Origin: Haplodiscus bocki
Lineage: Eukaryota
Assembly: GCA_965655095.1 (NCBI GenBank)
Contig: OZ296657.1
Location: 26,040,001 to 26,104,000, forward strand
Length of the DNA: 64,000 nt
Reading direction: 5' to 3'
Below the pieces are notes generated by a model. The model did no database searches, was not told where the DNA came from, and saw only the letters and a list, made by a program, of their open reading frames with translations. Within the stretch, counting starts at the first letter, position 1, and each line of letters opens with the position of its first letter. The position numbers were made by a program, and so were the translations under genes. This document shows, in pieces, positions 5,661-64,000 of this stretch.

Positions 5661-5699
5661 CAATCCTGGTTTGAAGAATCACAAAGATTCGAAGTTTAA

Positions 5700-6180: not shown

Positions 6181-6660
6181 ATGCTTAAACAATAATGAAT
6201 TAACATAAGTTATCTCTATCAGCACCAAAAGATCCATTTATGGATATGATGAACAGATTACAAGACAACAAAACAACTTTCCTAGCTTCAAAAAATCGAC
6301 TAACTGAAAAAATCACTACATGTCTCAGTGACAAAAACACAGAAAAAAAAGAAAATAACAAACACAGGTTGTTAGATACAATTTTGAAGTAAGTTGTTAT
6401 AATCGTATTTCTGCAGCAAACTCTACTCCTGTCTCAAGACTTCCTGCAGGATTTGGACGTATGGTAATTTCGATGTCAACAGGAAGTGACTGTTTTTTCT
6501 GAGATAGAAACGAAGTCCTAAATGACGTTTTTTTATGAAAAAAAACAAACTTGGTATGGAAAACAATTCCGGCGAGCTCAACAATTTTATTGTTTCGAAG
6601 AATCAAAAAGAATTGATTACAAGATTTTGCGGCTGAAAAATACAAAACGTGAACTTCTTC
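6181..6660 (+). pseudogene. Conserved small membrane protein remnant
   Basis: Syntenic with and similar to 45720-46230 (basic stretch followed by hydrophobic helices). Confidence 0.45.
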
Positions 6661-6789
6661 TTAGGATTTTGGACTGAAAGTGTTATTGAGAATAAAAACG
6701 AAAATTTTAAAAACTAAAACAAAAGAAAACAAAAAACTTTTTCAATAACACAATTTTGAACGTAAAACTTCCAGAGAAAAAAACTTGGG

Positions 6790-27489: not shown

Positions 27490-27898
27490 TCCATTGGAAG
27501 TGAAAGTGTACAAAAACTAATTCGCATACAATACTCAACCATGAAAACTATGTTTTAGATTTATTATTCAGAATAAACACTTTTCCATGTTTTACCTCTT
27601 ATGTAATTAACTATTATTTTAGGTGGATGGCACCCACAAGACCTAAAAAAAAATTTCCTTATATAACAAATCGTCTGTGTTCCTTTACTAGGTTGAAGAT
27701 TGAATATCAAATGTTGTGTTGAAAAATTGTCAACCCTCGTGGAAATTCCCACTTAGGAATCTAATCTTAATGATTTCAATACTTGTTGTAACCTAATATT
27801 ACTTGTTGCTTTATTTCTTAAATTGAAACTGGATAAAAATTCTGAAAAAGTATACTTTTATTTATTTAGTTTTTTCATCACAAATATATTTACTTCCA
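27490..27898 (-). pseudogene. Adenain-like protease remnant
   Basis: IFNLQPSKGTQTICY...SCGCHPPK; homologous to 49231-49500. Confidence 0.7.
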
Positions 27899-27899
27899 T

Positions 27900-28700
27900 T
27901 GTTATTTATGTTTTTTTCAACAAAGCTTCGTTATATCTCTCATGGTAATCATCTATTTTATAACTCGAAATTGTATCTTTAATAATTTCTGTAATATACA
28001 CTTCTGTACAATTCATATGACGAGTTAGTTGCATCTCCTCCTGAGAAAGTTCGCTTTGAATCTGCTGTTCCGACGAGATCACCTAATTCTTTTTTTTAAC
28101 TAGTTTTTTTTCGTCTAATACTTTTTGCTAAACATATCTTTCACTCTTTTCTAAAGAAGTATGGATTGATGTTAATTTAGTAGAAAAATGTTTTCTCTTA
28201 TTATATTGCCTTGTTTTTGTGTGTAAAATATCAGTCCAATTGCCATCTTTTTGTTGAAAACAGGTTGTTTACCAAGATCAATACAAGTGCGGTTGAATCT
28301 TTATGCAATAACTGTTCCTACTGAGTTATTGCTGGAATATGTTTTAACGTTTTTGATAATTAAGAGGTTAGTAAATATTTTTTTTCAAAGTTTTTACCAT
28401 CATCTGGTTCAATTATGTTTGGTTTTCTACTGAAAGACTTGATAATATTTTGAAAAAAGATTTTCATGGTTGAAGCATTTTTTTCACCAGGTTTTTTCCA
28501 ACCAAACCTGCCAACTATATCAATCATCACCAAAAATTATCTATTACCTCTATTTTTGTGTACCATTTTCCTTCAAATCTTTTACGTTTAAGTTCCGAGT
28601 ATAATCAATATGACAAACCGTGGCTTTTTTGGTGATATATTATTTTGGTAGTTTAGCATATAGTTCAGCGTTAAAAACCTAATCGTTCACTGAGATTTTA
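27900..28700 (-). pseudogene. rve-family (retroviral-like) integrase remnant
   Basis: LVMIDIVGRFG, RKPNIIEPDDGKNF, A*RFNRT, HFSTKLT, GDLVGTAD. Confidence 0.85.
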
Positions 28701-32687: not shown

Positions 32688-35600
32688 ATTCAATTTTGCT
32701 AGCGAAGATAGCAGTAAACACGTCTCCATCACAATCTTTTGATGGTATGATGCAATGTCTGTATTCATACCAAACATTCTCAAATACATTTTGATTGAGA
32801 GAAAAAATTTAAAAAAGTTTTTTATGAAATATACTTTTCTTTTTTTTTAACATCTTATCAGTACTCCGCCTTTGATAAAGTTTTTTTGATAATTTCTGGA
32901 AAAACAAATTTTCATAAAAACAATTTTTTTACAATATAGTTTTCGTTTTTTTTTTGGGTGGAGCCAGCATGACTCGGACAGTCCATAACTTTGAATCAGT
33001 AGCCCTCCTTTGACATAATACGTTTGAAAAATTTTTAAACTTTTCTTCTGTTAAAAAAATGTTTCGTTTAGAAAATAAGTTAGAATATTTTTTATCTTGC
33101 CTTTGTACCAACCCACTGATGTGTGCAAAAAACACAGCTGGCATATCTGGAGTATGTTATCGTTATCAGATTTTTTTCCCGATTTTCTACTTTCTTCTGT
33201 TTTATTTTTTTTAATTTTAGCCTCTAAATCATTATTCATGAGTACCCTCGTTGATGTGTGCAAAACACACAGTTCGCATAGCCACCATTTAAAATAGTTC
33301 TTTTTTTTTCAAAATATTTTTGAATTTTCAAACATGTTTGATTTTTTCATCTTTTAGATTTTATCCAAAGATTTTTCAAAAACTTATCTTATTTTTTTAA
33401 TTTCTGGTTTTGTGCAACTTTTTCATTTTTATTTGGTTTTAGTTTGTTTTATCTTACCTTTGTAATTTTCTTTTCGTTCTATTGGTAAATTTTTAGTTTT
33501 TTTGCAATTTTTTCATTTTCATTTTTTAGATTTTTTTAGTTTTCGTTTTTTAGTTTTAATTAATTTTTTTAAATTTTTTTCTTTTAATTAAATAACTTCT
33601 TTTTACCTTTTTACCTGTTTTTTTTCGCGTCATTCTTGTCTACCTCCATTGATGTATAGCGAACAATTCACGATCAACTAAAACAAAAACATTAGTAGTG
33701 TGTAAAACAGCATTTGACGCGAAAAACCGCGGACGCAGTAAAAATTAATAGAAAATTTAATGAAAGTTTATACTATAACAACGGGGGTTCACAAGAATGA
33801 AAAATAATTTTTGTAAAAAGTTTTATGAATGATATTATCATTGGGTGTACTCTGGAAGGAGAAAAGTTTTTAACGTACTTGTTTTTTATCTACAGCATAA
33901 AAGTTTTTGTAGCCTAAATTTTGTCTGTTGCTGTGATGACTTTCAATTGTTTTCGATGAATTTCATAAAATTAGGCGGATAGCTTCCGAACACTTAGTGG
34001 TGCGTGCGCAAACCAAAGATTTTCGAAAAATTTTCGCATGTTTGTCAGTTTTTGGATTGTTATTAGGTGTCTCAAAAAACATTACCAGCTGACCCACCTT
34101 GTTGCTAATTTCGTCAGCCTTAGCAACTTATTGCATCACTCGGAACCTAGACTACAGGTAAATCTACAACTTTCATAATGGGATTTTGAAATCAGCAAAA
34201 GCTTCAAGTGACCGAAAAAATAAGTCATTGACCAATATCAGTAAACAGTTTGGGTGAATGACAGTTCCCACACTCTGAGCGTTGTCTCAACCAACAAACT
34301 GTCTCTTCTAGAGGGGGATGAAGAAACGTATTTTTAAATAATGTTAGTTAACATGGGAGAATGGTTCACAAAACAGCGGCAAATATCGATGTCGGTGAAG
34401 TTAGTAGGTTTATTGATGTCGATGATCATTCAAAGATACCGGCTGCATCAGTAATCTTGGACCCCCTTCTTCCAAATTTTTCGGTCAAAGTTCAAAATTC
34501 AAAGTCTTCGAAATAAGTTTTCTGCCGCAAAATGTCCACCATCACACCAAGAAATCAATTTTGAGCAGAGCAGCCAAAAAAAGCAAAGTTTTACAACTCA
34601 CAGCCGGAATGAAGTTTTATATTTCTAAGTTTTTTCATAAATAACTCAAAGCGTTCTTTTGAAAATCATTTTCAAGAGTACCATTTTCTGTCAAAAACTA
34701 TACTTACTGAGCTAAGAGCGAGCTTCCTCCGACGATGGGTTCCCTTTTTCAACATTTCAGCAAGTTTTTTTACCATTTCTGACCCACTACCGGCGAAATT
34801 TTTGCAGCGCTGTTGAGTCTTTTGTTTAGCGTCTGCTCATTGTTGGGAAAGTTTACTTATTCGAAATACTTTCACTCAGCCAACATTATTTGAAGGCAAT
34901 GGAAAACATCGCCTCAATGAGCAACTGGTTCGAATTGCAGTTGCCTAGTTGATAAAGAATCAATGAGGTAGCTTAGTAGAATCATTTTAGCATAACCATA
35001 TAAAACATTTTACACACCCAAAATAGCGCACAACGTAAAACAAATTAGTAAAAAACAGCAAAAATTAAGTGAAATTAGTAAAAAACCGCAAAGTTTAGGT
35101 AAAATTATATAAAAAAAGTGCAGGATAATGTAAAATTATACTATATCAATGGGAGAACACAGGAAACTATAGAAATTGTACTATATGATGGCTAGGCCAA
35201 TTCTGTGCTTGGCACACATCAATGGAGGTACACGGGAATGTTGATGAAAAATAAAAATTCTATTTCGGGAAAACAAAGGTACACTCAGAGGGAGGTTGTC
35301 GGTCTCAATTAAAATCAATAGCTCATAGTTTAATTAGTCCACGCTGAAAGTTTGAGCCTCACATCTATCATAGTTTTCGAGAAAACAAATTTTAAAATAG
35401 ATCAAAGGGCTCAAAAGTAAGTAGAAAACCACTCGAGCGGAAACTTTTTTTACGAAAGCAACGAAGTTTTAAGCTACAGAAAATTATAATATAACATTGA
35501 AAACGTTTTGAAAAATGCTATTCAATGGTAATTTTTTCGAAAACGTTGACTGAAACTATTATCATCAAAAACCTGAAACTAAACTTGAAACATGGTATAC

Positions 35601-35839
35601 CAAAAAAAAGTGTAAATTTTAGTGGAGTGTTATACATCCTTGGAAAGTTCTTGAAAAAAGGTACTCAATAGTAATGTTCTAGACAACGTTGGCTGAAACT
35701 ATTCCCATCTGAAACTGCAAAGATTGGTTATTTCAATGAAAAATTTTCGAAAAATTATGACATATTATATACCGTTCAAAAGGTGTTGAAAAGCTTTATT
35801 CAATGATACCATTTTCGAAACGTTGTATAATACATTTAG

Positions 35840-36410
35840 CTTGAATCTCTGTCGTGAATAGGTTTACAATTTTTAAAATCATTACCATATTCAACGATAC
35901 CTTCATTTTCAACTGTAAATTTATTGCCTTTCCTTTCATCATCTTTTTTATATAACTAAACATACTCATCTTTTTGTGTTGAATTTTTATGTTCTTCAAA
36001 AGGGATATTTTCTCGATGGAACAGAAACTAAATATTTTCTATACCGTGAGCATATGGGTATTTTACATCATTAAAAGCATCAATTGAACTGTATTCAACT
36101 ATGGTATAAGTCGTTTCAAAGCTGACTATTTTTTCTCCCGCATGAATATATTTTTCATGTTCAATTTCCAATAGGAGTTTTTTATCGTTTAGTCTTCTAT
36201 TATAAAAATCTTCTGGGTGTTCATTTGGTTTAAGCAAATTCAAATAATTAGGATTCATAAGTATTTCAGTTTCATGATGTGGACCTTTTCTACAGGGCAT
36301 TTTATAAACCTGAGTTTTGTTTGAATTACTAAAAATTAAAACCATATAAGTATGAAATCTATTATGTCAGAACGGTTGGATTTCAGGGTTGTTTTTGCCA
36401 AATATAGATT
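35840..36410 (-). pseudogene. Conserved terminal accessory gene (family of 58459-58977)
   Basis: LLEIEHEKYIHAGEKIVSFET...NDVKYPYAHGIENI. Confidence 0.6.
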
Positions 36411-36653
36411 TCATTTTTATTTTCATTTTATCATCCATTTCTTTGAAACAATTTCACCCGATGTGAAAATTGTCATATGGAAACCACATTTTTTTCTTTT
36501 TATGTCTTTTTTATTAATATCACTGAATATATAATTCACCTCAATGTCTAGATTTTCAAAACCGTATTCCTTAACAACGATACCATTTTTTTGTTTATAT
36601 GTGTTTTGATTTACTTTTAATTATATATATTTTTCATATAAATACCTGAGAAA

Positions 36654-36944
36654 TGAAAAACACATTTTGTTGAGAACAACTATCAAAAACCGGTGATCTC
36701 AAGGTTGGTTTGATAATGAGACAAAATAAGTTGGATAAAATGGCTAAACTTATGGAAATCAACAATTTCAAACCAAAACTAAAAAAATCTAAAAAAGCTA
36801 GATGGTTGAAAGCATCACCTTCTACATCACAACGTTATAGAAGAGAATAAAATATGCTTTCACCCTATAGAATACCAAGCATTGCCACAAGAAAACAAAA
36901 TTCATCCGACCATGATCACAAAATGACCTCAAATGACCACAAAA
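36654..36944 (+). pseudogene. HTH gene remnant, truncated
   Basis: Reverse-complement copy of 50577-50868. Confidence 0.65.
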
Positions 36945-37431
36945 TTCTTTCTTTTAATCCTCTCGACTATTAAGAGTTCGTCATTTTTTCGTCTACGCTA
37001 AATGAAAATTCATCGTTTTTTTCCTCTCCAGAAAACAACAAACCAAGTTGCAAAGCAAATGGTTTTCGATTTGGTTCCGTTTGACAAAATGAATTTTTGT
37101 AGTGCGTGAAACAGCTTTTGACGCAAAAAACCGCGGAGGCAGTAAAAATTAAGCAAAATTTATTTAAAAATTATACTATAACAATGGGTGTACACAAGAA
37201 AGAAAGTTTTTTCAATGTACCTGTTTTTTATCTACAGCGTATGAAAGTTTGCTCTTTAATTTTTTATATTTACATAAACATAGACTTAAAGAAAAGTTTG
37301 CACGTGTATTTCTTATGTTTAAGCGATACTGAAAAAACCACCACCACCACACACTAAAAAGGGTGTTTGTATCTCGAAGATGGTAGTCTACCATGTATAC
37401 ATACCATAACTAGTTTTTTTCTTTCTTTTTT

Positions 37432-37690
37432 GTCTCCTATAGCTGATTGGTATATGCAAAGTGGCATTGACTAAAGTTAAGGCTGTACTTGCATAGTCGT
37501 AGTGTGTTGTGGTTCACTATTATCCAACGTCCCACTGTCTATGTCGTGCAACCATCATGAAACTTTAGGAGGAACTGTCGATATCACGATGCCTAAGAAG
37601 CTTACATGTTCGATAGGAAAGCTTCGCCAGGAACGATCACTCGAAGACAGTTGAAAAACTAGACATGAATTTTGGCCCGTAACGTTTTTT
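37432..37690 (+). ncRNA. Putative structured non-coding RNA (~259 nt), more eroded copy
   Basis: Aligns end to end with the reverse complement of 56725-56978; covarying stems; ends in a T6 run. Confidence 0.55.
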
Positions 37691-39387: not shown

Positions 39388-42300
39388 CTAATTCAAAGGT
39401 AAACTTTCAATATTATTTTATAACAACGTTTATCACCAAAAGGTGATATTTTAGATTTTTTTATTTTTTGAAGATACTTTTCATGATTAAGTGATCTAAG
39501 AATATAATTATCACTTTCTGTTTGTTACTTTTCACCATCTAAACAATTTTTATTTTCATATTTAACATGTTTCGATTGAGCTTCAGAAATAACTTTTAAT
39601 TTCTCCGTGTTTTTATCATTATATTTAAATGAATGAGTTTTACTCCTCAAAGCAATAAATTCATCTATCCAAATATTTTTAGGAGCTTCAATTTTATATT
39701 CACCAAGAACTTTTTTTATTTCTATTACTGAATAAGTCATAATCTTTGATTAAATTGCCGATATCAAACAAGTCTTCAAATTTTTTTAAATCAATATTAA
39801 TTTTTTCAGTTCTGATACTCAACACAAAAATGTCACAGTCCACATACAGTAATTTTAAAAGTTCCTGTCCAAAACATGGTTGTAAATTATCATAATTTCT
39901 TGCATACAATAATAATTTTCAAAAAGCTAATACAGTAAATCTTAAAAAAATTGGTTTCATTCTTCTTAAAAATATAACTATCATAATTTTCATATGACTT
40001 ATGAATTTCATTGAGGGTTAATTTAAATTGTTGTTTTAATATTTTTTTTTACTCATATTTCTTTATTTAAAAAATCTAATCTCACACAATTTTGTACGTT
40101 TTCCATTGTTTTCCCATAAAGTGATTTTTAAAGTGATTATTAAAATTACCTTTCAAAATAATTTTTTGCTAATATTCTTTTTTGTGTATCAAAATTATTT
40201 TTTTTTCTACCACTCACTTTGTTTAGAAGAAATAGTCTCATGATTTTTTCTACTATAATCCCACGTCTTACATAAATTTTTAACATTCTTTATTGAATCA
40301 AGTAATTTTTTTATCCGTCCAATTGCAAATTAACTTTTCATTTTTTGGATAAAGAACTGGTTTTGTCTTTTTTTATGTATTCAGTAAACTTAGCTCGGAG
40401 CAAAAGGAATTCTTTTGTATTTAGTTTTATATTATCAGGATATTTCGATTCAACTTCAACGAAATAACCAAAATTACTATCATCCTCATTATTTATAAAA
40501 ATTTCAAAATTATCCATCTAAAGATCACGATGACCATGCCACATCTCAATTCGACCATAAGGTAACATTTGAGACATTGCCCAACAATACGAATTATTTG
40601 CATCAAAATACAAGATCTTTTGCCTTTCATCTGATAGAACATAACTATCACCCATTACAGAGCCTAATGCATCTCTAACATTGTTCTCTAATGACAAAAT
40701 TAAATGTTATCTTGAAGGGTTGTAGTTTAATATTAGTTTGTTTCAATGCACAACGCCAAGTATAACCAGGTGAACTCACACAATACAAAGTTAAAACCTT
40801 TAATTGATAGATTAAAAAGTTTCTCAAAAACATCAGCTAAATTAATTACAATACTTCTCAAAAATAGTACTGTAATTTCTTCTCCACTTTTAATATTAAA
40901 AAAGTTAATAGTTTCTTTTTTTCGTTCGTTTTGTTCGTCCTTAGGATATTTGTTTTTAAGTTACTGAAGGAGCCTTCTTTCTTTAAATCTTCAACAGCTT
41001 TTTAATAACCCTCAAGACCAGTAAAGTATTTTTGAGGATAGGCTAATTTTTATTTAGATATTGCCAATTATCTGGAAATTCATTTTTCGAAACCACGAAT
41101 TCATCACTATCTAAACTTTTAACTAGTGAATCTAAGCTACTTGATAACAATCGGTAGCTATCAATAAATCCTATACAACCATAAGTAACACAAAGGTATT
41201 CTTCGTTCGTTTCAGGTATAAAATCAAATTTAACTTTATCATTCTTTCTATCAACTAACTCTTTAAAAAACAGATGGCAATCAAAATTAGTGAAATTAAG
41301 CAGTGCAACTGGTATAAATTTACTTTGTGTTTGTATGATATTAATATTACATTTGTTTTTAGCTTGTCCTCGGTATTTAATTGTTAAGCGACAATGACAT
41401 CTAACTTTATCAGATTCTAGAGTTTTTCACAAAAATGACAAACCTAATTGTAATCCAAATCCTCTCTTTCTTTTTGCATCAAAAAACATCTTTCCTAGTG
41501 TTTTTTAAAAGAAAACCATTTTAGTTTCCAATTTAATAATTTCCTTCACAAACCATTTTACATTATCATATCCTATAGCAGATTTATAATAACCACTTTT
41601 CAAACACCCTCCAATTCAGAAACTATACAACAACCATTACACGCAGGGTTTTCTATATGAATAATAAATGTTTTAAAACCTTTACTAGATTTATCGATTT
41701 CATTAGCGGCTTCAAATTCTGCAATAATCCTAAAATATAACGCATTCTTATTAAAATGTTTTTTCCCTTGACGTTGAGGTTCGTTTGAAATTATAATAGT
41801 AGTTATTTCTTTAACTTCACATCTTGGTTTATGTATCATTAACAAAAATTCACTTCTATAGGAAATTAAACACCGTCTATGTATGACTTTGTTTATGATT
41901 CCCCAAAATGACACGTAGTTTTTTTAAGGAGAGCACAAGGATTTTCATAGATTAATATGTCAACAAATCTATCTGGTTCAGTTTTTCACTAATGTCTTTA
42001 GGAAATAAATTATATTTCCTTTTGTTTTGATCTTGATAAAACTTCAGTTCAAATATGGTAGTAGATAAGTTAAATAATTTCTCAGATATATACATATCAC
42101 TACACCTAAATCCTTCAGTAAAATCAAAACCTTGAATGTTTGATTCGTTGAAGTTTTGTCCATAAAAATATTTACTCTTGTTGGATGACCATTTTGACAA
42201 GGACGAAGTTGAGCTATTAGAGATCAAAGGAAGCGATATTTATCAATATGTTCAATTTTTAAGATAGCATTTGATCTCAACGGAAGAATAATACAACTCG

Positions 42301-43020
42301 AACCATTCAATTCATCAGTTTTATAAAATCGTTTTCTCATTGAGTTAACTTTATCAAATATCAATCCACTATCCTTTTTTTCCTGAATTTGATTTTGATG
42401 TTCTAATTGTCATTTATCGTCAATGGTATTAAAATCAGATTCTGTTAACTTTTTCCTAATACTCAAAATGATAAATACTTCGAATTCATCACCTCTTTGA
42501 TCTTCTTCACTATTCTCATGAAAGCTGGCTGAATATAATATATGATATTTAATTTTTTATTGATCTAATATTGCAGCGTAAACAAAAGTCAATTTTTAAA
42601 AAGATTTTGTGAATATAACTGGTTTCAATCCCAAAATTTATGAGAATTGGTATAATGGTTAAAACAGAACTTGAAAGAATATTATTATAACTATGAAGAA
42701 TATTTTGGAAACCAAATTTCAAGCTATTATCAGTGGAATATTATGGATTAATCGTTTTTTTAGCTACCTTGTCATCTATTTTTTTCTCATTTGTTTTAGT
42801 ATTTTCTATAACTATCTGTCTTAGGAGTTTAGGATTCTTTATTTTCAAAATTTTTTATCAATAGGTTTTTGCTCTTCTCTAATTGACCATTCTGATACAA
42901 TTATAACATCTTGTTTTATTTTCTCCGAATGATTTTCAGTTCTCAAATGTTTTGCATAACACGCTCGATGAAAATCAATATCACAAAATTTACACCTGCG
43001 GCTGTTTTTCCATTTTGCGT
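39388..43020 (-). pseudogene. polB: Protein-primed family B DNA polymerase
   Basis: N-terminal CKFC..H..H finger, DSGLIFD, CHCRLTIKYRGQA..CN, FIDSYRLLSSSLDSL, YFDANNSYCWAMSQ, YVDCD, FIALRSK, SPFGDKR. Confidence 0.92.
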
Positions 43021-43084
43021 GTCTATTTATTATGGATGAATTCGTTGAAATAAAAACCCCTTTTCAAAAAAAAATAATAAATCA

Positions 43085-43419: not shown

Positions 43420-43850
43420 TGAAATGGAGATCCTCATAAAAGACATGTCTTGCAAAAGGGCGACGGTAATTCGGTTGATGTATCAACCACAATAACGAAA
43501 CAATTTTTTAATAAAATACATTCTTCTACTAAATTAACACCAATACAAGCTTCTTTAAAAACCAATGAAGGATATGTTTACCATTATTTATTAAACAAAC
43601 AAACGAAAATAGAACCAAAAATTCAAGTAGACAATCTCGTCATAACAGCAGACTTGAAAACAACTTTCTCAAAACGAGATGCGACTCATTGTTCCTATAA
43701 AATGTTTAAAATAACAGAAATTATAAATGATACAATACCGAGTTATCGCATTGATAATTGAAAAAAACGATATAATGAAGCCATGTTGAAAAAAAAAATT
43801 TAACTTTGAAAGAAAAAAAAACAGTTATGAAAGCCCTAAACTTTATTTAA
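43420..43850 (+). pseudogene. Integrase C-terminal half; catalytic core deleted
   Basis: KIHSSTKLTPIQASLK...VDNLVITADLKTTFSKRD...ITEIINDTIPSYRID; homologous to 27900-28250. Confidence 0.85.
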
Positions 43851-49500: not shown

Positions 49501-50576
49501 TACCTCCTTCTAAATCACCTCTACGTCTTCCAACAAACAAAAAGTTTTTTCAAACTGCATCAGGTTTGGGTAAACTACCAAATAAACCTTCATTATCAAG
49601 TACTTGTATATTTGTTTTAACAGCTCTTTGAACTAACACCTCTTTTACAGACCGTTTGCTATCGTTGTTATCTTCTTCATTATTTGAAATATGAGCTTCT
49701 GCTTTTGATGAAATTTCATCTAAAAACCTTTGTTCATGACATGTGTATCATTGGAAGGTTCAAAATTTGTTGTTTTTTTTCATCTTTTTTAAAAATATCG
49801 AATTTTTCAAGTTTTAATTTGTTAAGATTAATATCTTGTACTTTATCTCTTTTAGAGACAATACTATCCAACTCGTTTTACCATGGTTTTTTGTAACTTT
49901 TTTGTTCCATTTTTTAACAAGGATAATCGGGATTGCATACAATAGTAGATAAAGAAACACATAATTTTTATGAAATTGTTTCTATAAACAAATCAAAATC
50001 AAAACAAAAATTTAAAATAAAGATTTTAGTTTCGTTGTTGTTTTTTATGTTTAAGGTGTTTGTGATTATTAAGCAAAATATTCAATATATCCATAATACT
50101 ATCACGTTTTTTCAAGTGTTATTTTATTTAACCCTAATCGTTTGTTCTCTTTTTTAACTTCAGAATCTGGCAACCATATTTTATTCTCCAAAAATTCTGT
50201 TCCAGTACCTTTTTGCTCTATTTCTTTATCCATATCTTCAATTGTGTCTCCCATTATTATTATTGCTTGTTCAAAAACGTTACCTCGGTTCAAAGCAGTC
50301 TGCCTTATTTTTGATTGTGTTGAAAACGTTTCCTCATCATCTTTTCCAAGGGTTTGTGATATTTCGTTTTGGATATTTGAATGTTTTCATTTATAATTTC
50401 TCTAAATTCAGCCATTTAAACATTTTAAAAAGATTATTCGGAAAGAATATTTCCTTGAGTAGGACTATCATCATTTGGACCTCCATCTCTTAAGTTATTT
50501 TTTGTTTTTTTTTAGGAACCAGGTTCATCATTTTCATTTGAGTTTTTTGAGGTCACTTTGAGGTCATTTGAAGTCA

Positions 50577-50868
50577 TTTTGTGGTCATTTGAGGTCAATT
50601 TCTGATCATGGTCGGATGAATTTTGTTTGCATGTCGGAATGTTTGGTATTCTATAGGGTAAAAGCATATTTTATTCTCTTCTATAACGTTGTGATGTAGA
50701 AGGTGATGTCTTCAACTCTCTAGCTATTTCCGATTTTTTTAATTTTGGGTTGAAAGAGTTGATTTCTATAAGTTTAGCCATTATATCCATATTATTTTGT
50801 CTCATTATCAAATCAGCTTTGAGATCACTGGTTTTTGATATTTGTTCTGAAGAAAATGTGTAATTCAT
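50577..50868 (-). pseudogene. HTH DNA-binding protein
   Basis: NPKLKKSEIARELKTSPSTSQRYRRE. Confidence 0.7.
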
Positions 50869-51167
50869 TATTCAGGTATTTATATAAAAAATATATATAT
50901 TTAAAAGTAAATCAAAACACGTATACACAAAAAAATGGTATGGTTGTTAAAAAATACGAATTTAATAATATAGACATTGAAGTGAATTATATATTCAATA
51001 TTATTATTAAAATAGACATAAAAAGAAAAAAATGTGGTTTCTATATGATAATTTTCACATCGGGTAAATTTGTTTCAAATAAGTGAATGATAACAAAAAT
51101 GAAATCTAGACTTGGAAAAAACAACCCCGAAATCCACACGTTCAGACTTAATAGATTTCATACTTAT

Positions 51168-51677
51168 ATGGTTTTAATTTTTAGTAATTCAAACAAAGCT
51201 CAGATTTATAAAATGGTTTATAGAAATAGTACACATCATGAAATTGAAACATTTATGAATCCTACTTATTTGAATTTGGTTAAACCAAATGAAGACACAG
51301 AAGATTTTCATAATAGAGGACTAAACGATAAAAAATTCCTCTTTGAAATTGAAGATTAAAATTATATTCATGTGGGAGAAAAATTAGTTAGCTTTGAAAC
51401 ACTGACACCATAGTGGAGTACAATTCAATTGATGATTTTAATGATGTAAAATACCCATATGCTCACGGTATAGAAAACATTTAATTTCTGTTCCATCGAA
51501 AATATATCTCTTTTGAAGAATATAAAAATTCAACACAAAAGGATGAGTTTGTTTAGTTATATAAAAAAGATGATGAAAGGAAAGGCAACAAATTTACAGT
51601 TGAAAATGAACGTATCGTTGAATATGGTAATGATTTTATAAATTGTAAACTTATTCACGACAGAGATTCGAAATAAA
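51168..51677 (+). pseudogene. Terminal accessory gene (inverted copy of 35840-36410)
   Basis: MVLIFSNSNKAQIYKM...NDVKYPYAHGIENI. Confidence 0.6.
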
Positions 51678-54420
51678 TGTAATATACAACGTATCGGAAA
51701 ATGGTATCATTGAATAGAGCTTTTCAACACCTTTTGAACGATATATAATATGTCATAATTTTTCAAAAATTTTTCATTGAAATACCCAATCTTTGGAGTT
51801 TCAGATTGTAATAGTTTTAGCCAACGTTGTCGAAAACATTACTTTTGAATAACTTTTTCCAAGAACTTTCTAATGACTTATAACACTCCACTAATATTTA
51901 TACTTTTTATTGGTATACCATGTTTCATGTTTAGTTTCAGGTTTTTGATGTTAATAGTTTCAGTCAACGTTTTCGACAAAATTACCATTGAATAGTATTT
52001 TTCAGGACGTTTTCAATGATATATTATATTTTTCTGTAGCCTAAAACTTCGTTGCTTTCGTAATTGTTACATGTTTAAAAGACCGTGGGAAAGTCTGAAT
52101 AGAAAATAAAAGAAATTTCCACTTGAGTGGTTTTCTACTTACCTTTTAGCCTTTGATCTGTTTTAAAATTGTTTTTCTCGAAAACTATGATAAATATGAG
52201 GCTCAAACTTTCAGGGTGGACTAATTAGACTATGAGCTTATGATTTTAATTGAGACCGACAACCTCTGAGTATACCATTGTTTTCCCGAAACAGAACTTT
52301 TTTTTCATCAACATTCCTGTGTTACTACATTGATGTGTGCCAAGCACAGAGTTGGCCTAGCTATCATATAGTATAATTACTATAGTTTCCTGTGTTCTCC
52401 CATTGGTATAGTATAATTTTACATTATCCTACACTTTTTTTATTAATTTTACCTAAACTTTGCTGTTTTTTACTAATTTTACTTAATTTTTCCTGTTTTT
52501 TACTAGTTTGTTTTACGTTGTTTGCTATTTTGAGTGTGTAAAAAGTTTTATATGGTTATGCTAAAATGATTCTGCTAAGCTACCTCATCGATTCTATATC
52601 AACTAGGCAACTGCAATTTGAACCAGTTGCTCATTGAGGCGATGTTTTCCATTGCCTTCAAATAATGTTGGCTGAGTGAAAGTATTTCGAATAAGTAAAC
52701 TTTCCCAACAATGAGCAGACGCTAAACAAAAGACTCAGCAGCGCTGCAAAAGTTTCGCCGGTGATGGGTCAGAAATGGTAAGGAAACTTGATGAAATGTT
52801 AAAAAAAGGGAACCCATCGTCGGAGGAGGCTCGCTCTTAGCTCAGTAAGTATAGTTTTCGACAGAAAATGGTACTCCTAAAAGCTACTTTCAAAAGAACG
52901 CTTTGAGTTATTTATGAAAAAGTTTAGAAATTTAAAATTTCCTTCCGGCTGTGAGTCGAAAAACTTTGCTTTTTTTGGTTGCTGTGCTCAAAATTGATTT
53001 CTTGGTGTGAAGACGGACAATTTCGGGCAGAAAAGTTATTTCGAAGACTTTGAATTTTGAACTTTGACCGAAAAATTTGGAAGAAGGGGGTCCAACATTA
53101 CTGATGCAGCCGGTATCTTTGAATGATCATCGACATCAATAAACCTACTAACTTCACCGACATCGATATTTGCCGCTGTTTTGTGAACCATTCTCCCATG
53201 TTAACTAACATTATTTAAAAATACGTTTCTTCATCCCCCTCTAGAAGAGACAGTTTGTTGGTTGAGACAACGCTCAGAGTGTGGGAACTGTCATTCACTC
53301 AAACTGTTTACTGATATTGGTCAATGACTCATTGACTTGACGGCCTTTGCTGATTTTAAGTTCCCATTATGAAAGTTGTAGACTTACTTGTAATCTAGGT
53401 TCCGAGTGATGCAAAAAGTTGCTAAGGCTGACGAAAATAGAACAAGGTGGTTCAGCTGGTAATGTTTTTTGAGACACCTAAAAACAATCCAAAAACTGAC
53501 AAACATGCGAAAATTTTTTAAAAATCATTGGTTTGCGCACGCACCACTAAGTGTTCGGAAGCTGTCTGCTCGTGGTTTGAAAGTGACCATTTATCAAGTT
53601 TTTCTACAAGTTTGATCCCCATTAGCTGGAAAGTTATGCTTTGGGCGCTAATAGTACTTAGAGCTGAAGAGTCATTCCATGTTTCAAGTTGGCTGCTGAT
53701 CAAACTGATTTTTTTCTTCTGGAGCAGTTAAAGTCTCAAAAATGTCTTTTGTTATTTTTCTTCGGAAGACTACTAACCCTAGTGGGACGTGCAGATATTT
53801 TTGTGAAGTGCATGCATGCAGGCAGCCAATTTCTTTATGAACCATGGAAAATTAAGACTTTTAGCATACAAAAATTTTGATTGTTGTCGCTGCAGCAGCA
53901 GCAAAAGTTTGTTCAAGATGTCAAGGTAATACAGAAAACGTAAGAGTTATCACACCTCTATTGATTGACTCAATCATTACTACCTCTGAGGTGCTCATAT
54001 TAGTTATTTCCTTTAGGCTTTGACCATTCACCTTTTTTTTGCTTAGTAAGTGACTCGGCGCGGGTACTTATAAAGATAATCTGTATTGTTGCTAATGTAA
54101 TGCGCGACAAATTTGTAAGTCTGTCCGTTGTAAGAGTAATCAGGCTGCATCCAAAAGCCTGCAAGACGTTTTCTAAATTTTTGTCTGCCAATTTCTGAAA
54201 GCAAATTACACAACCCCGCCTAATTTTTCGAAATTCATTGAAGAAACTTGAAAGATATCACAGCAATAGACAAAACTTAGGCATGGAAAATTTAATATGA
54301 ATCATTAAAAAACTTTGGAAAAGTGTTTAGAACCATATAAAATCTAACAAAACTTTCCTGATTTTCGACTAGGAAGGTTTTCCACAAATTATTAGTTAAA
54401 TGTAATGGTTTTAAAGAGAT

Positions 54421-56439
54421 TTGATGCTAATAGTTTCAGTCAACGTTTTCCAAAAAATTACCATTGAACAGCTTTTTTCAGGACGTTTTCAAAGATATAT
54501 TTAATTTTTTGGAGCTCAAAATTTCGTAGCTTCTGGAATTTTTACATGTTTAAGTGACCGTGGGAAAGTCTGAATAGAAAATAAAAAAAGTTTCCACTTG
54601 TATGGTTTTCTACTTACCTTTTAGCCTTTTGATCAATTTTAAGTTTTTTTTCTCAAAAACTATGATAGATATGAGTCTCAAACTTTCAGGGTGGACTAAT
54701 TAGACTATGAGCCATTGATTTTAATTGAGACCGACAACCTCTGAGTATACCTTTCTTTTCCCGAAATAGATTTTTTATTTTCTATCAACATTCCTGTGTA
54801 CCTCCATTGATGTGTGCAAAGCACAGAGTGAGCCTAGCCATCATATAGTATGATTACTATAAATTCCTGTGTTCCCCCATTGATACAGTACAATTTTACG
54901 TTATCCTACACTTTTTTTTATTAATTTTACCTAAACTTTGCTGTTTTTTACTAATTTTACTTAATCTTTGCTGTTTTTTACTAATTTGTTTTACGTTGTG
55001 CGCTATTTTGGGTGTAAAAAAAGTTTTATATGGTTATGCTAAAATGATTCTACTAAGCTACACCATCGATTCTATATCAACTAGGCAACTGCTATTTGGA
55101 CCAGTTGCTCATTGAGACGATTTCTTCCATTGCCTTCAAATAAAATTGGCTGAGTGAAAGTAATTCGGATAAGTAAACCTTCCCAACAATGAGCAGACGC
55201 TAAACAAAAGACTCAGCAGCGCTGCAAAATTTTAGCCGGTGGTGGGTCAGAAATGGCAAAAAAAACTTGCTGAAAACTTAAAAAAAGGGAACCCATGGTC
55301 GGCGGAGGCTCGCTCTTAGCTCAGTAAGTATAGTATTAGACAGAATATGGTACTCTTGAAAGTGATTTTCAAAAGAACGCTGTGAGTTATATATGAAAAA
55401 AGTTAGAAAAATAGAACTTCCTTCCGGCTGTGAGTTGAAAGACTTTGGTTTTTTGGCTGCTGTGCTCAAAATTGATTTCTTGGTGTGATGACGGACTTTT
55501 TCGGGCAGAAATATTTTTTGGAAGACTTTGAGTTCTGAGTTTTAACCGAAAATTTTGCAAGAAGGGGGTCTAAGATCACTGATGCAGCCGGTATCTTTGA
55601 ATGATCATCAACATCAGTAAACCAACTAATTTCACCGACGTCGATATTTGCCGCTGTTTTCTGAAGCACCCTCCCATGTTAACTGACATCATTTAAAAAT
55701 ACGTTTCTTCATCCCACTGTAGAAGAGACACTTTGCTGGTCGAGTCAACGCTCAGAGTGTTGAAACTGTCATTCACTCAAACTGTTTACTGTTATTGGTC
55801 AATGACTCATTTTCTGGGTCACTTGACGGCTTTTGCTGATTTCAAGTTCCCAATATCAAAGCTGTAGACTTACTTGTAATCTAGGTTCCGAGTGATGCAA
55901 AAAGTTGCTACGGCTGACGAAAATAGAACAAGGTGGTTCAGCTGGTAATGTTTTTTGAGACACCTAAAAACAATCCAAAAACTGACAAACATGCGAAAAT
56001 TTTTTAAAAATCATTGGTTTGCGCACGCACCACTAAGTGTTCGGAAGCTGTCTGCTCGTGGTTTGAAAGTGACCATTTATCAAGTTTTTCTACAAGTTTG
56101 ATCCCCATTAGCTGGAAAGTTATGCTTTGGGCGCTAATAGTACTTAGAGCTGAAGAGTCATTCCATGTTTCATTTTGGCTGCTGATCAAACTGAATTTTT
56201 TTCTTCTGAAGCAGTTAAAGTCTCAAAAATATCTTTTGGTATTTTTCTTCGGAAGACTACTAACCCTAGTTGGACGTGCAGATAATTTTGCAAAGTGCAT
56301 GCATGCATGCAGCCAATTTTTTTTATCAACCATGGAAAATTAGGACTCTTAGCATACTTGTATTTTGATTTTTTTCGCTGCAGCAGCAGCAAAAATTTGT
56401 TCAAGATGTCAAGGTAATACAGAAAACGTAAAAGTTATC
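54421..56439 (+). repeat. Direct tandem copy of terminal region 51945-53951
   Basis: Collinear alignment; duplicated ORF-track entries at 53518/56004 and 53528/56014. Confidence 0.92.
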
Positions 56440-56453
56440 GCAAATATTATAGT

Positions 56454-56541
56454 ATATTGCGGATAATATCAGTAGTCCTCACCGAGCTCATTCGCTTCGC
56501 TCATTCACTCAATTCGTCCCAATGATATTATCCGACAATAT
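56454..56541. other. Long imperfect hairpin with GCTC-rich loop at the left boundary of element D
   Basis: ATATTG-CGGATAATATCA (56454-56471) is complementary to TGATATTATCCGACAATAT (56523-56541). Confidence 0.7.
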
Positions 56542-56724
56542 CCACGCTCGGTCGTTCGCTAAGCTCACTCACCGGCTTCCCTCCAGTCAGCCTCTCGCTT
56601 ATTTTATTGGCTGCGCCACTCACTTGCCTTTTTTTATACACTACTTAGTCGTGAAACTATTGAATTAAGTTTAAAAAGAAATAAAATTGAAATTATAAAA
56701 TTATGTACAATTTTTAATTTTTAC

Positions 56725-56978
56725 AAAAACGTCACTGGCCAAGCCTGATGTCTACGTTTTCAAGCAGCTTACAGGAACCTTTCCTGGCAACGTTTCCCAT
56801 CGATCTAGTCAGCTTTTTCAAGCATTAAGATATAGACAGTGCCTCCATATAGCTTTCGTGCATGATGACAAAGACTGGGGGACGTTGGCTAACAGTGAAC
56901 CCCAAACACTGTGACTACCAATTAAGCATCGTCTTAACTTTAGTCAATGTAGCAAATACCACTAGGCTATACAGAGGC
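56725..56978 (-). ncRNA. Putative Pol III-type structured RNA (~254 nt), better preserved copy
   Basis: 13-bp closing stem with two G.U pairs, pseudoknot, GAAA tetraloop hairpin, TATATATA at -32..-25, T5 run at the 3' end. Confidence 0.6.
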
Positions 56979-57089
56979 AGTATAAAGGTAGAGAAACTAG
57001 AATATATATACAAATTCTATTATGGTTCACACAATTTCTCAGTCTCGTGCACGTGTATGTTGTAATAAGTCGACAGACCTTAAACATGC

Positions 57090-57365
57090 ACAGATTTTGA
57101 AGTTTTAAGGTACAACAAAGTGTGATATATCAATGGATAGCCCTTTAAAAGTTTAGTTTGTGCTGAAAAATTCAGCTCTGTAATTTTTGTAATCTTCGAG
57201 AAAATTGATAAAATCAGTATATGTCAACATACCTCAAACATGAAGAGATTACAAATTTTCGAGCTCGAACAATGTGTGATATATCATTCAATAGCCGTCA
57301 AAAAATTAGTATACCCTGAAAATTTCAACTCTGTATCCATTATAATCTTCGAGAAATTGATATTA
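57090..57365 (+). repeat. Two diverged ~154-bp tandem units
   Basis: TGTGATATATCA at 57121 and 57275, each followed by ATAGCC..CTGAAAA..TCA.CTCTGTA..TAATCTTCGAGAAA. Confidence 0.8.
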
Positions 57366-58075
57366 TAAATTTACAAAATTATTAGATTTCTTTTTATTTG
57401 ATAATATTTTTTCATGATATCTTGCATTTCTTTGTCCATGTATATTGTACTTTTTAGATTTGTTGTTATTTTTAAAATATAAATACTTACTTTTATATGA
57501 GTACGAATACTAGAGTATACTTACAATTATAAGAGTTTTAATACAATCACTGATAATTAACTGATATACAATTATGCGAGTATTTTTACTAGGGTATACT
57601 TACAATTATAAGTGTTTATTACCTGTCTAGTTTTTTCGAAGTATTCTTTTATTTTTACAACCTTTTATATGTCCTCAAATGTTATGCGTTATCACTTTCC
57701 TCAACCATTTTCTGTTCGTACATCTCAAAGATTTTAGGCCTCAAAGTTGTTATTAACGATTTATCAAAATAAAGTTTATTTCCATTGTAAGCTATCTACA
57801 AATTATCGAGATTTCCTATCAATTCTTTCAATTTGTTAAAATTTACGTTACCAAATTCATCCATTAAAAACTTTCAAATATTGATAAATGTATTTTTTTC
57901 CAAACCAATTATGATGTTGAAAATTTCTATTTGATTTAGAAAACCCAACACATCCTTAATCGTATCCATTTATATAGTATAAATCGTCATATCCATTCAA
58001 CAAACCATCTAATAGGTTTTTTTTATTCGTTGTTTTTTTTCAACCATTTAAAATTATTTATAAAACATCGTACTC

Positions 58076-58458: not shown

Positions 58459-58977
58459 TTAATCATAATTTGAACGAGTTTTATATACTCGTAATTTTTG
58501 ACAATTTGAAATATCGTGATAATCAAATAACTTATCAATATCATTCTCATCAGTTTTTTCATTCTTAGTATATTTAAAATATGGTGTTAAATAATATTTA
58601 TTTTCCCATCCTACTGCTATACTACAAGGTGTTAAATTATTCTCCATATTTGAGATGTATTTGTATATTCTATCATTAGTTAGAAATGAACATATCATAT
58701 CACCTCCGATATACACATACCTATATCTTTTATTCTTTTTTCCTATTTTAAGTAAAATAGTATTTCCATTAAATACTTCTTTATCCATTGCTCCCGAAAA
58801 TTCTGTCATATCATGTAGATGACTTTTGCCTAAAAATGTTTCCATAGGATTAACTTCGTTTATAATACTTTTATCATTAGAAAAATCTTCAAATGTTTGT
58901 ACCTTAGTCATTCCATTATTTTGAAAGGTTATATCATAACAAACACAATTGTATTTGGTTACATATATAATAGTCAT
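58459..58977 (-). CDS. Conserved viral hypothetical protein, 172 aa
   Basis: Intact ORF; GNTILL..YVYIG..SF..D.I..Y.S..NN..P..A.G.EN pattern shared with three other loci in the window. Confidence 0.7.
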   Translation of the reverse strand: MTIIYVTKYNCVCYDITFQNNGMTKVQTFEDFSNDKSIINEVNPMETFLGKSHLHDMTEFSGAMDKEVFNGNTILLKIGKKNKRYRYVYIGGDMICSFLTNDRIYKYISNMENNLTPCSIAVGWENKYYLTPYFKYTKNEKTDENDIDKLFDYHDISNCQKLRVYKTRSNYD

Positions 58978-59306
58978 TTATATAGTATAAAATTAGAATA
59001 GATGAATACATACAATTATATATGTCTTTTTTTTCCTAATTATTCTTTTTTACTAATTTTTCTTTTCAATTCTATATCTGAATCTTTTATTGTTCCACCC
59101 ATTATGTTAATCAATTCTACAAGAATCACATTTTGAATCAAAGTATCATAACCTCTTTTTGATTGATAATTATAAGGTAATCTATTATATCTATCTAACA
59201 TATCACTTATTTTAACTCAAACTATAGGATCTTTTCTAATTACATTTATAAAATCTTCCATTTCAATAATGATAAATCATTCCAAGTAATCTTGCTTATA
59301 TGAAAA

Positions 59307-60139: not shown

Positions 60140-60866
60140 ATGGAGAAATATTTATATCCAAATCATGCAGTTCGTTGTATTATAACCGGTCCATGAAATT
60201 CGGGCAAAAGTGTTTTTCTAACAAATTTTATTTTTGAATGTTATTAACGAATAAAATAAAATATACATCTATTCACCTAGTCTTCATCAAGAATTATATC
60301 AAAAATTAAATGAATGTTTCAGTAAATATATACCTATTCACATAATCCCAATTACCTTGAATGAAGAAAATATAGATATAGTAATTGAAGAGATAGTTAA
60401 TAATGAAGACTTTGAAAAATCAGATACTGAGATAGAAACGTATGAAAGTATACAAGAATTAAAATTTCCCCAAGAGTATGATGATGGGGGTAATATTATA
60501 CTAGATGATCTCAATGGAAAAGAAATGAATGATCCTCGAGTACAAGCAATGTTCAAAAGATCTAGACATAATAATTTATCTATGTTTATAATCTCTCAAT
60601 ATTACTACGAATTACCAAAGAGAACTAGAAGAGCTAAAGGTAATGTCTATCATATCTTCAAACCAAACAATTTCAGAGATGTTCAGAATTTATATCGAGA
60701 TAAAGCTTCCATGGATATGGCACTCATTGAATTTAAATAACTAACCAGTACTTGTTGGAATGAAATGTTCTAAACTCTCACTATTGATATGACTAAAGAT
60801 AAATATACTGGTCGATATCATCTCGGATTAGATAGTATATATATACCAGATAGCTCTCCTTTTTGA
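60140..60866 (+). pseudogene. A32/FtsK-like packaging ATPase
   Basis: IITGP*NSGKS (Walker A with a stop), IILDDL (Walker B), FKRSRHNNLSMFIISQYYYELPKRT. Confidence 0.92.
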
Positions 60867-60913: not shown

Positions 60914-61770
60914 ATGAGTATTTATTCTATTGTAATAGAAGAAGATTTAATTATTCTACGTAAATTAGCAGAGCAACAAAAAGAACAACCAGTACTGAAA
61001 ATTAAAAGTAGAATTTTAAAACAAACACATGATTTTAGGCTGGCAGAATCTTTATCACCAAAAACTAAAGAATTTGATACCATTAATGAGAGTACTAGAA
61101 ACTCAGGTAAATCTATTAAGGAATCGAATTCTAAAATTGAATTAAAATCTCTACCAAATTGCTCTAAATTTTGTAATTCAATGCGACAGATGTTAGGATC
61201 GCTAATGAATAGTCGGAAATCTCTAAAAATTACTCGAGATGAATTAGGTAGGGCAAATATTTTAGGCGTTCCTATTCAAATATTACAAGGTGATACAATA
61301 AAAATAAATGAAAATCTCTATGAATTAACTCCAGAAAAATAAAAAGCATTAACACAACCTTTATACACTGGTAAAACTATGAAGATTGATGATGATTTTT
61401 TAATGTTGTATAATATTTTAAAAGATGTTAAATATACAGGTGTAGAAGATAGACCATCTAACAGAAAAACATTCTCCACAATCAATCTGCCTGAAAACGT
61501 CAGTGAAATTAACAACATAAAATATATTGAAAATACAGACGATTCTGATAGTGATTAACAAGGAGAAAGAATTGAAAAAATTATCATACCCTCTAACATA
61601 ATTGATATTTACACTAGACTTGAAATGTTACTCGGACTCAAACTGAGTGGTCATACTGATACTCTAACAGAAGCAACAAGCAACTTAAAAGATGATTTAT
61701 ACAAGACAGGTGAAATACAAAACAAACAACAATATCGAAATGCTCTCAATAAATTTTCATCTTTTTTAAT
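60914..61770 (+). pseudogene. Conserved coiled-coil gene after the ATPase
   Basis: ORF pieces 60914-61342 and 61625 onward; IDIYTRLEMLLGLKLSGHT. Confidence 0.65.
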
Positions 61771-62887: not shown

Positions 62888-64000
62888 GTTTGTACTTTAT
62901 AATTGAGCTTAGAAGATTTTCAGTTATTAGAAAATGAACCATTTCATAATAGTATCATAAAAAGAGATTTTTAAAGAATTTATCACCAACAAGGAGCTCA
63001 ATTAAATAACAGTGATCAAAATATTGAATTTATTTTCGGAGATAATAACAATTTTCATCAAATAGGAGGTGCATATCTCGAATTTGATATAACAGTTCGT
63101 AGAGAAGATAATGCTAATTTTACTGATAATAGTCCCATAAGATTGACAAACAAGGCATTCGCGTGTTGTTTCAAAGAGACTCGTTTAGGTATAACATCAG
63201 GGAGTGATCTAGAACATAATAAATGCGTCGGCCCTGTATCAACTCTTTTGAGACTTTTAACTATCAAAGACGGTGATTTACTATCCCAGTTTGATAATAA
63301 TAATGAGGGTAACGGTAACGCTAATTTTGACTCTACTTCGTTGAAAAAAATGTTGATAAGTAATCATGATTTAGCTAATAAAGGGAAAAAAAGGACAATT
63401 AGCCTTAGAACCTGATTTCGGATTTTGTAAATCCTTCAAGAAAACTACAAAAATTTTAGGCTTTCATATAACAATCAGAACAGCTGATCTACAAAATATC
63501 ATTTTTACATCAATAGGTGATAACATTAATGTAACTGAAAGTAGTTTATATTTGTTCGTACCCACTCTAATTCCAAATACTGAAACTCGTTTCTTGTTTA
63601 ATGAATCTATCCGAAATAATTATAGAATATTTTTCGATGATTGGTATACTGCAAGAACAGTTATGTCTGATACAATAATTCAATTCGATACAGGAAGCGC
63701 TCAACAGGTCAATAGCCCAAAATACTTGATAGCATCTCACCAAACAGCAGCAAGATTAAATGCTCCTGATAAAAATATAAATGTATCAAGATTTGATAAT
63801 CTTAATGTAAGAAAATAGTTTGTAGAAATTGATGGAGTACAATATCTTTGTGATGGTGTTCTTACAAAGTCTGCTGAGAATGATTATATAGTTCATTATA
63901 AAGACTTAAAATTATTTTATAAAGTTTACGTTGGTGAAGAACTATTAAATCCCTATGTATCTCACCCCGAAAAAAAACTAAATATCCCGTACAAGTAATT
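62888..64000 (+). pseudogene. Major capsid protein, runs off the window
   Basis: NSIIKRDF*RIYHQQGAQLN..AYLEFDITVR..IRLTN..FKETRL..GSDLEH..LFVPTLIP..EIDGVQY. Confidence 0.8.

Follow-up and report, generated by a model that had tools for sequence, protein, structure and literature searches.

A candidate gene for a structured RNA, present as an optional cassette in a family of Polinton-like elements

What kind of gene, if any, is represented by a unit of about 255 nt that occurs in two diverged copies within a 64,000-nucleotide stretch of DNA (the window)? A first-pass annotation had proposed a discrete, strand-specific, virus-encoded RNA with a pseudoknot and a U6-type promoter, and the question is how much of this proposal stands. 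By aligning copy B (minus strand, 56725-56978) with copy A (plus strand, 37432-37690) over the whole 254-259-nt unit, 67.6% identity with 13 gapped columns was obtained, whereas the 250-nt flanks, taken upstream of -45 and downstream of the T-run, are 46-47% identical, which is the random level. The unit is discrete and aligns end to end, and approximately 40 nt upstream of the two copies also align, with a T/A box followed by CTAG. The window itself lies on contig ctg86775 (237,842 bp) of ERZ26859043, an ENA metagenome assembly; it contains no N, has a GC content of 23-36% and holds only three ORFs of at least 150 aa. A 17-mer that had been called invariant has just two exact occurrences in the window, 37465-37481 (plus strand) and 56933-56949 (minus strand); its invariance does not extend across the wider family.

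A homolog search, which had been proposed along with the original reading, was carried out with a sequence profile and then with a covariance model (R1), the latter over about 280 kb. Four further copies were recovered with covariance-model E values of 1e-49 to 1e-69, each in a Polinton-like element, bringing the total to six: 6476-6730 (plus strand) in locus L003, 6940-7196 (minus strand) in L004, 6276-6531 (plus strand) in L010 and 5487-5743 (plus strand) in L012. Copy B, whose limits were set by alignment and covariance model at the first G of the closing stem and the T5 run, is 254 nt long and scores 253 bits (E 6e-60); copy A, at 259 nt and 209 bits, is the most divergent and is 64-72% identical to the remaining copies. 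All six come from one ENA metagenome assembly (ERZ26859043), presumably from one organism, and represent about three lineages, so that the covariation counts given below rest on few independent events. The RNA unit is better conserved than its flanks and than ATPase-coding DNA. In the L003/L010 pair, the RNA is 97% identical, compared to 75% downstream and 87% in the ATPase gene; in the pair of copy B and L004, the RNA is 85% identical, compared to 52-70% in the surroundings and 78% in the ATPase gene. The GC content of the unit is 42-45%, as opposed to 23-30% in the element. The unit contains no ORF, each sense frame has 3-8 stops, and the antisense open stretches are not conserved. Codon-periodic conservation, which had been named as a sign of a protein exon, was looked for in the variable columns of the RNA alignment and is absent (p = 0.62). 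A protein-coding reading is rejected by the stops in all sense frames and the lack of codon periodicity.

In the model-fitted alignment of the six copies, standard pairs make up 93.4% of 393 cells, compared to 32-47% when the partners are slid. Fourteen pairs are changed on both sides, whereas shuffling yields 8.0 on average and none of 500 shuffles reaches 14; these counts come from the same six sequences from which the structure was derived. The double changes fall in the pseudoknot hairpin (three), the 3' terminal stem (five), its continuation (three) and the two GAAA hairpins (two and one). In a separate helix set that includes the pseudoknot, 90% of the cells are paired and 12 pairs are compensatory, whereas 1000 random placements gave 3 on average and never more than 8. 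Copy B has a minimum free energy of -78.2 kcal/mol with a z-score of -2.41, compared to -1.34 for the opposite strand; the sense strand folds better than the antisense strand. The single-sequence z-scores are uneven (-3.1, -2.4, -0.95 and -0.13, the last being that of copy A). The compensatory changes, together with conserved G.U pairs, fix the strand of the RNA. In general, the pair counts support the reading as a discrete, strand-specific structured non-coding RNA with a pseudoknot.

The RNA folds into three domains: a 138-nt pseudoknot-bearing domain, a GAAA-tipped hairpin, and a long 3' stem with a second GAAA hairpin. In copy B, the 5' domain (RNA nt 1-138; 56841-56978, minus strand), as delimited by pair counts, is closed by a 13-bp stem (1-13/126-138) that has the two G.U pairs already recognized. 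This stem shows only one-sided changes (C-G to U.G) and thus rests on conservation rather than on double changes; likewise, double changes are absent from the long-range helices of the 5' domain in all six copies. Inside the closing stem lie a small hairpin (17-30), a stem-loop (34-66) and a further hairpin (67-87). This last hairpin (67-72/82-87, with a 9-nt loop) is part of a predicted H-type pseudoknot (56877-56912, minus strand), in which GGGG (76-79) of the loop pairs with CCCC (99-102). All 60 cells of the pseudoknot are standard in the six copies, and three of the six hairpin pairs and one of the four pseudoknot pairs are double-changed; at the second pair of the pseudoknot, two copies have G-C and four have U-A. 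The replacements read from the window copies, ACAGUG/CACUGU to GUAGUG/CACUAU in the hairpin and GGGG/CCCC to GUGG/CCAC between its loop and the downstream segment, were confirmed. The pseudoknot linker UA.CCAACGUC is invariant, and so is the UUG/CAA stem. The central hairpin domain (nt 140-182; 56797-56839, minus strand) has a CUGUC/GAUGG base, an AUCU/AGAU helix and the GCUU-GAAA-AAGC tip that had been described for copy B, and five of the six copies retain this GAAA-tipped hairpin. The UGUC/GACA pairing suggested to close this domain had to be given up, since it is broken in L004 and L012, and CUGUC with GAUGG, GACGG or GAUAG fits better. The 3' domain (nt 183-254; 56725-56796, minus strand) is formed by a long stem, an internal loop in which CCAGGAA and UUGGCC are invariant, and the second GAAA-tipped hairpin. 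The terminal U-run is paired with GGRAA within the covarying stem, and double changes are found in five pairs of the terminal stem and two pairs of the tip hairpin.

The transcription signals of the unit can be compared across the same six copies. Upstream of copy B (56979-57050, minus strand), the T/A box lies at about -34 to -23 (57001-57012), with TATATATA at 57003-57010 as annotated, followed by CTAG at -22 (56997-57000) and preceded by a GAGACTG block at -68. Upstream of copy A (37390-37431, plus strand), the T/A box starts at -38 and CTAG again lies at -22. In fact, CTAG follows the T/A box in all six copies (at -22, in L003 at -20), and the T/A box occupies -34 to -24 in four of them; it starts at -42 in L012 (second A/T run near -30). 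Within the predicted transcribed region, all six copies share an A-box-like block (+9 or +10), a B-box-like block (+74 to +80) and a terminal run of five or six T. For the two window copies, the first description of the A-box-like block, at +10 and +9, and of the T5 and T6 ends is confirmed. Both internal blocks match the tRNA consensus as given by Rfam, and the B-box-like block is changed in L012. On the sense strand, five of the six copies lack any internal T4 run, as do only 4.6% of the 250-nt windows of the same DNA; copy A has one such run, and the antisense strand of the unit has 1-4. The GAGACTG block is found in only three of the six copies (at -68, -69 or about -47), and a strict U6-type promoter is therefore unsupported. 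What stands of the annotated U6-type promoter is the T/A box near -30 with the conserved CTAG, and what speaks against it is the upstream block in half of the copies together with the conservation of the internal blocks. The unit resembles type 3 genes (U6, 7SK and RNase MRP-type) in the T/A box near -30 and the T-run end, but it differs from them in having no conserved proximal element near -55, in keeping an internal A-like block in six of six copies and in matching no model.

The protein genes of the elements begin in another manner. In L004, L005 and L006, TAA directly precedes ATG (TAAATG) in 39 of 58 element protein genes, compared to 7% of all ATGs. This context looks like a virus-type initiator, and an analogue is known in the late promoters of poxviruses; it suggests that the element protein genes depend on a viral, not a host, transcription system. 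The RNA promoter, on the other hand, appears to be host-type and of a different class from those of the protein genes. Judged by the signals of the unit, it is moderately likely that polymerase III makes the RNA. No host polymerase-III genes that could serve for promoter comparison are present in the sampled loci. GTATA-type 6-mers are enriched upstream of the element genes of L004, L005 and L006.

To characterize the carrier, loci round eleven ATPase relatives were compared. They share a collinear gene set of small leftward genes, an ATPase, a protein with a double-jelly-roll (DJR)-like domain, an ORF of 430-530 aa, a protease-like gene and an rve integrase. Among the called genes, the integrase (PF00665), the A32 ATPase (PF04665) and the double-jelly-roll capsid protein (PF21738) were recognized by Pfam, and an adenain-like protease match is weak (E 0.0013, below the cut-off). 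The A32-type ATPase has 3390 relatives, nearly all on long ENA contigs, the intact ones being 241 aa long; an ATPase-based search of IMG/VR found none. The element in L003 is 14 kb long and is bounded by terminal inverted repeats (TIRs) of 252 nt that are 98% identical. No called gene at 10 loci has a Pfam match to a family B polymerase, and the collinear genes are all shorter than 540 aa. As polymerase B is not seen in the 14-kb TIR-bounded copy, we describe the family as Polinton-like rather than as Polintons in the strict sense. The term Polinton in the first-pass annotation therefore holds for the ATPase, capsid, integrase and TIRs and fails for the protein-primed polymerase B. Two subtypes can be told apart by their terminal repeats. 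In one, the terminal block is palindromic, with 61-nt arms that are 95-100% complementary and about 113 nt apart (L004, 6546-6896; L012, 5074-5392; L006, 6717-7068; L011, 5864-6187); the second has a different terminal repeat (L003, window 56443-56632 and L005). RNA-bearing and RNA-free members occur in both. An ABC-2 transporter exon that looks host-like lies about 3.2 kb outside the element in L012 (1196-1876, plus strand), and its best named relatives, at 54-60% identity, are from oomycetes. This single gene hints that the host of the elements may be a stramenopile-like protist and not an animal or plant.

The element that contains copy B (element B) begins near 56443 and extends past the window end (locus L001 extends to window coordinate 69822). 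Its terminal-repeat-like block (56443-56632) was identified by blastn homology to both TIR arms of L003 (6136-6326 and 19969-20159). Tandem repeats of about 150 bp and a conserved segment, block C, lie at 57062-57636, between the RNA cassette and the first genes. The first protein gene (58462-58977, minus strand) is open, encodes 172 aa and has homologs among the small leftward genes in L004 and L005 and no Pfam family. Element B is decayed, and most of its protein genes are broken; the frameshifts and stops given here were counted by tblastn and are outer bounds only. Several small genes have one or two stops each, among them a small leftward gene at 59025-59261 (minus strand), with two in frame. 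The A32-type packaging ATPase (60140-60863, plus strand; Pox_A32 E 2.3e-5) has at least one frameshift and up to six in-frame stops, counted over overlapping pieces. On the same strand follow a homolog of a 302-aa L005 protein (60914-61762) with two in-frame stops, a homolog of a 258-260-aa protein of L004 and L005 (61769-62558) in four pieces and three frames with at least two frameshifts and about five stops, a homolog of a 201-252-aa protein of L004 and L005 (62903-63629) with at least one frameshift and one stop, and the DJR-like-domain (capsid-type) gene (63513-64000), which runs off the window end and likewise has at least one frameshift and one stop. Beyond the window, the 533-aa ORF has at least two frameshifts and about seven stops, and the integrase has at least one frameshift and three stops. 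Inside this element of mostly broken protein genes, the fold of copy B is kept: nine of its nine lineage-specific changes in paired columns preserve the pair.

In agreement with the expectation that homologs are associated with element ends, five of the six RNA copies sit just inside the terminus of Polinton-like elements, after the terminal block and ahead of the first genes. The L003 copy starts 89 nt inside the TIR. The cassette is found in five of ten informative elements and is absent from L005, L006, L009, L011 and L014, each of which includes at least 4 kb upstream of the ATPase (L014 was compared by DNA similarity only). It faces outward in two elements, those of copy B and L004, and inward in the other three (L003, L010 and L012), with the terminal block on one side and block C on the other. 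At the empty sites in L006 and L011, these two blocks are 16-18 nt apart, and the RNA with its promoter is thus a clean indel of 340-355 bp. Elements with and without the RNA are intermixed across ATPase clusters, and the cassette is evidently dispensable, since half of the elements, including the intact-looking L005, lack it.

Such a distribution could also be produced by a SINE- or MITE-like selfish unit, derived from a tRNA and made by polymerase III, that entered the elements, travels with them and keeps its fold for its own propagation, a reading that we consider rather unlikely. The discrete indel with clean empty sites, the two orientations, the mosaic presence across ATPase clusters and both kinds of terminal block, the A- and B-box-like blocks and the dispensability are all what such a unit would display. 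However, the homology spans 35-70 nt of upstream untranscribed promoter, so that the copies spread as DNA rather than through retroposition; an A-rich or repeat tail is absent, target duplications were not seen, and in the approximately 280 kb searched five of the six copies are at one element site, copy A lies among repeats and element relics, and no RNA was found elsewhere. A retroposed SINE in particular is rejected by the promoter DNA within the homology, the fixed site and the lack of a tail and of target duplications. A strong match to a known host RNA or SINE, which had been regarded as damaging to the original proposal, was not encountered: the Rfam searches described below gave none, and the SINE hallmarks are absent.

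The surroundings of copy A are of another kind. The statement that the RNA is conserved in two divergent elements is borne out for copy B, and copy A has no recognizable element: beyond integrase relics 6-9 kb away, no element homology was found round it. These rve integrase relics (27864-28378, minus strand, and 43438-43785, plus strand) were identified by similarity to related elements, and the stretch that contains them is a graveyard of such elements. A relic of the region downstream of the integrase lies at 42010-43051, and the relics between 27864 and 43785 are in scrambled order. The left arm of an inverted repeat of about 3 kb (33975-36945; partner 50576-53569, about 90% identity) has its inner edge 487 nt before copy A and may mark where another, decayed element ends; the pair brackets 13.6 kb. 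Copy A itself is probably decaying, as judged by its internal T4 run and by 13 of 20 lineage-specific changes in paired columns that break the pair, a count to which misalignment adds. The window is rich in other repeats as well. A 2.48-kb tandem duplication (51944-53836 and 54420-56323, 86-98%) adjoins the left end of element B within the inverted repeat; satellite-like repeats of 143-156 bp are found inside the inverted repeat, at 16.5-17.2 kb and at 37.9-38.5 kb; and positions 1-3000 and 8642-11500 form a direct duplication about 8.64 kb apart with 96-100% identity.

No known family accounts for the RNA, as had been stated. At gathering score, Rfam gave nothing on the RNA unit in searches of the whole window and seven loci, and at E up to 10, three copies gave nothing except a weak match to RAGATH-11. 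Rfam includes models for the U6, 7SK, RNase P/MRP, SRP, Y and vault classes, and these cellular polymerase-III RNAs are rejected on the basis of the three-copy search. A tRNA or tmRNA is rejected as well, since ARAGORN finds no cloverleaf and the unit has no Rfam tRNA match, and a guide or antisense reading is rejected because the RNA and its own element show no conserved complementarity. Somewhat less likely than a selfish unit is a captured host polymerase-III RNA gene that is too divergent for Rfam, copy A being the cellular gene or a relic of it. The ends of RNase P/MRP, Y and vault RNAs pair with each other, and the ends of the present RNA, unlike these, do not; moreover, no weak match to a cellular class was found with the three copies, and copy A looks decayed amid repeats and element relics. 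On the other hand, capture would fit both the lack of a recognizable element round copy A and a promoter that is host-type, unlike those of the element's own genes, and tRNA and snRNA genes have been reported in Polinton-like viruses by a survey of these viruses and virophages that covered known Rfam families only (PMC12220804). The first 40 nt and the B-box-like block of the unit resemble the promoter regions of tRNAs, but the unit differs from the RNA genes of that survey in having no cloverleaf and no Rfam family. We found no comparable RNA described for Polintons, Polinton-like viruses or virophages, the survey being limited to Rfam classes.

Based on the results presented above, the unit is very probably a functional structured RNA gene that forms an optional cassette of a Polinton-like element family. 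Our best guess for its nature is a host-transcribed, protein-binding viral RNA, and we lean slightly towards the joint reading of an RNA gene of a Polinton-like virus family, made by polymerase III and having a trans-acting, protein-binding role. By this mechanism, a Polinton-like virus family endogenous to an AT-rich protist would carry an accessory structured-RNA gene of about 255 nt within a 340-355-bp cassette that includes the promoter and is placed between the terminal block and the first genes. Host RNA polymerase III would transcribe the RNA from integrated copies, as the signals in the DNA suggest, and would terminate in T5-6; the A- and B-box-like internal blocks were probably inherited from a tRNA gene. 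Expression of the RNA would be independent of the protein genes of the element, with their TAAATG starts. The weakest step is the proposal that the RNA acts in trans as a stable protein-binding particle, for which the invariant pseudoknot linker and the CCAGGAA/UUGGCC loop may provide the binding surfaces. Finally, the RNA may adjust a host or helper-virus process to the benefit of the element, as is the case for small RNAs that polymerase III makes from larger DNA viruses.

Adenoviruses and herpesviruses rely on small, structured polymerase-III RNAs as key tools in their interaction with the host. Like the VA, EBER and herpesvirus tRNA-linked RNAs, the present RNA is virus-carried, falls in the range of 150-260 nt, is highly structured and is dispensable for particle genes, with internal blocks of the A/B type and an oligo-T terminus. 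It differs from VA and EBER RNAs in its H-type pseudoknot and two GAAA hairpins, in the lack of any sequence or model match, and in 5' and 3' ends that form no common terminal stem; the vertebrate targets of VA and EBER RNAs do not apply, the predicted host being a protist. Adenoviruses and Polinton-like viruses are evolutionarily related (PMC10328495). A more specific and improbable extension of the preferred reading is that the RNA is the only host-transcribed gene of the element, made from the silent integrated copy while the protein genes all await a virus-type transcription signal (TAAATG starts), and that its invariant pseudoknot module senses or interferes with an incoming helper or giant virus, or controls the exit from latency. 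If so, the RNA would contribute to the antiviral role that has been proposed for Polinton-like viruses in their integrated state.

The group of Polintons, Polinton-like viruses and virophages is ancient and very abundant, and a family-specific, covarying RNA with a host-type promoter would add a non-protein gene to it. Such an RNA would mark integrated copies that are possibly active at the RNA level despite dead protein genes, and would offer a new pseudoknot-containing fold for structural study; the optional, invertible cassette bears on the exchange of accessory genes among elements. The position next to the genome end raises a further alternative, a cis-acting or virion-linked RNA for genome handling, such as a phi29-type packaging-motor RNA or a terminus signal. 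The element encodes a packaging ATPase, and the pairing of the loop with a distant segment could equally take place between molecules. We nevertheless regard this as very unlikely, since half of the elements, intact-looking ones among them, lack the RNA, its orientation with respect to the terminus varies, Rfam gives no match to the phage packaging RNA and A32-type motors are not known to use RNA. A small-RNA precursor with a tRNA-like head and excised hairpins, as in some herpesvirus polymerase-III transcripts, would match the layout of a head domain, two hairpins and a T-run, but it is the least probable reading, because the stems covary with no constant arm and are short and interrupted, the invariant bases are in loops, the GAAA tips suggest tertiary contacts and the head is not a cloverleaf.

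The single resemblance that emerged from Rfam concerns the pseudoknot module of the preferred RNA gene and is treated here as a lead only. RAGATH-11 (RF03148), a bacterial and metagenomic RNA motif, gives 24.0 bits with copy B and 26.4 bits with L008 and nothing with copy A or L003, the gathering score being 79.4. The RNA shares with this motif the order of a hairpin, a hairpin with a GUUUGNGGUUC-type loop, UA and AACGUCCC, but it stays below the threshold score and the 55-nt middle hairpin is missing, the two having been compared via the model alignment only. A pattern scan for RAGATH-11 in bacterial and archaeal genomes gave matches at about the chance rate (approximately 500 expected by our own estimate); the hairpin was present round the loop in only 7 of 120, and none reached the Rfam threshold. 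No literature naming the motif was found. An exact-pattern scan for the pseudoknot module gave nothing in IMG/VR and one partial match, L008, in a metagenome collection. This match is a 59-nt stretch with 38.5 bits, and 37 of 39 nt are identical to the L003 module. Should the antiviral or latency reading be true, the module in L008, and perhaps RAGATH-11, would represent a functional RNA module that is both old and portable. The L008 contig, of 3.6 kb, is GC-rich and comes from another sample; in it, only the pseudoknot hairpin and the CCAACGUCCC linker (448-506, minus strand) are shared and the context is otherwise unrelated; the module lies approximately 500 nt downstream of an orphan ORF of 481 aa.
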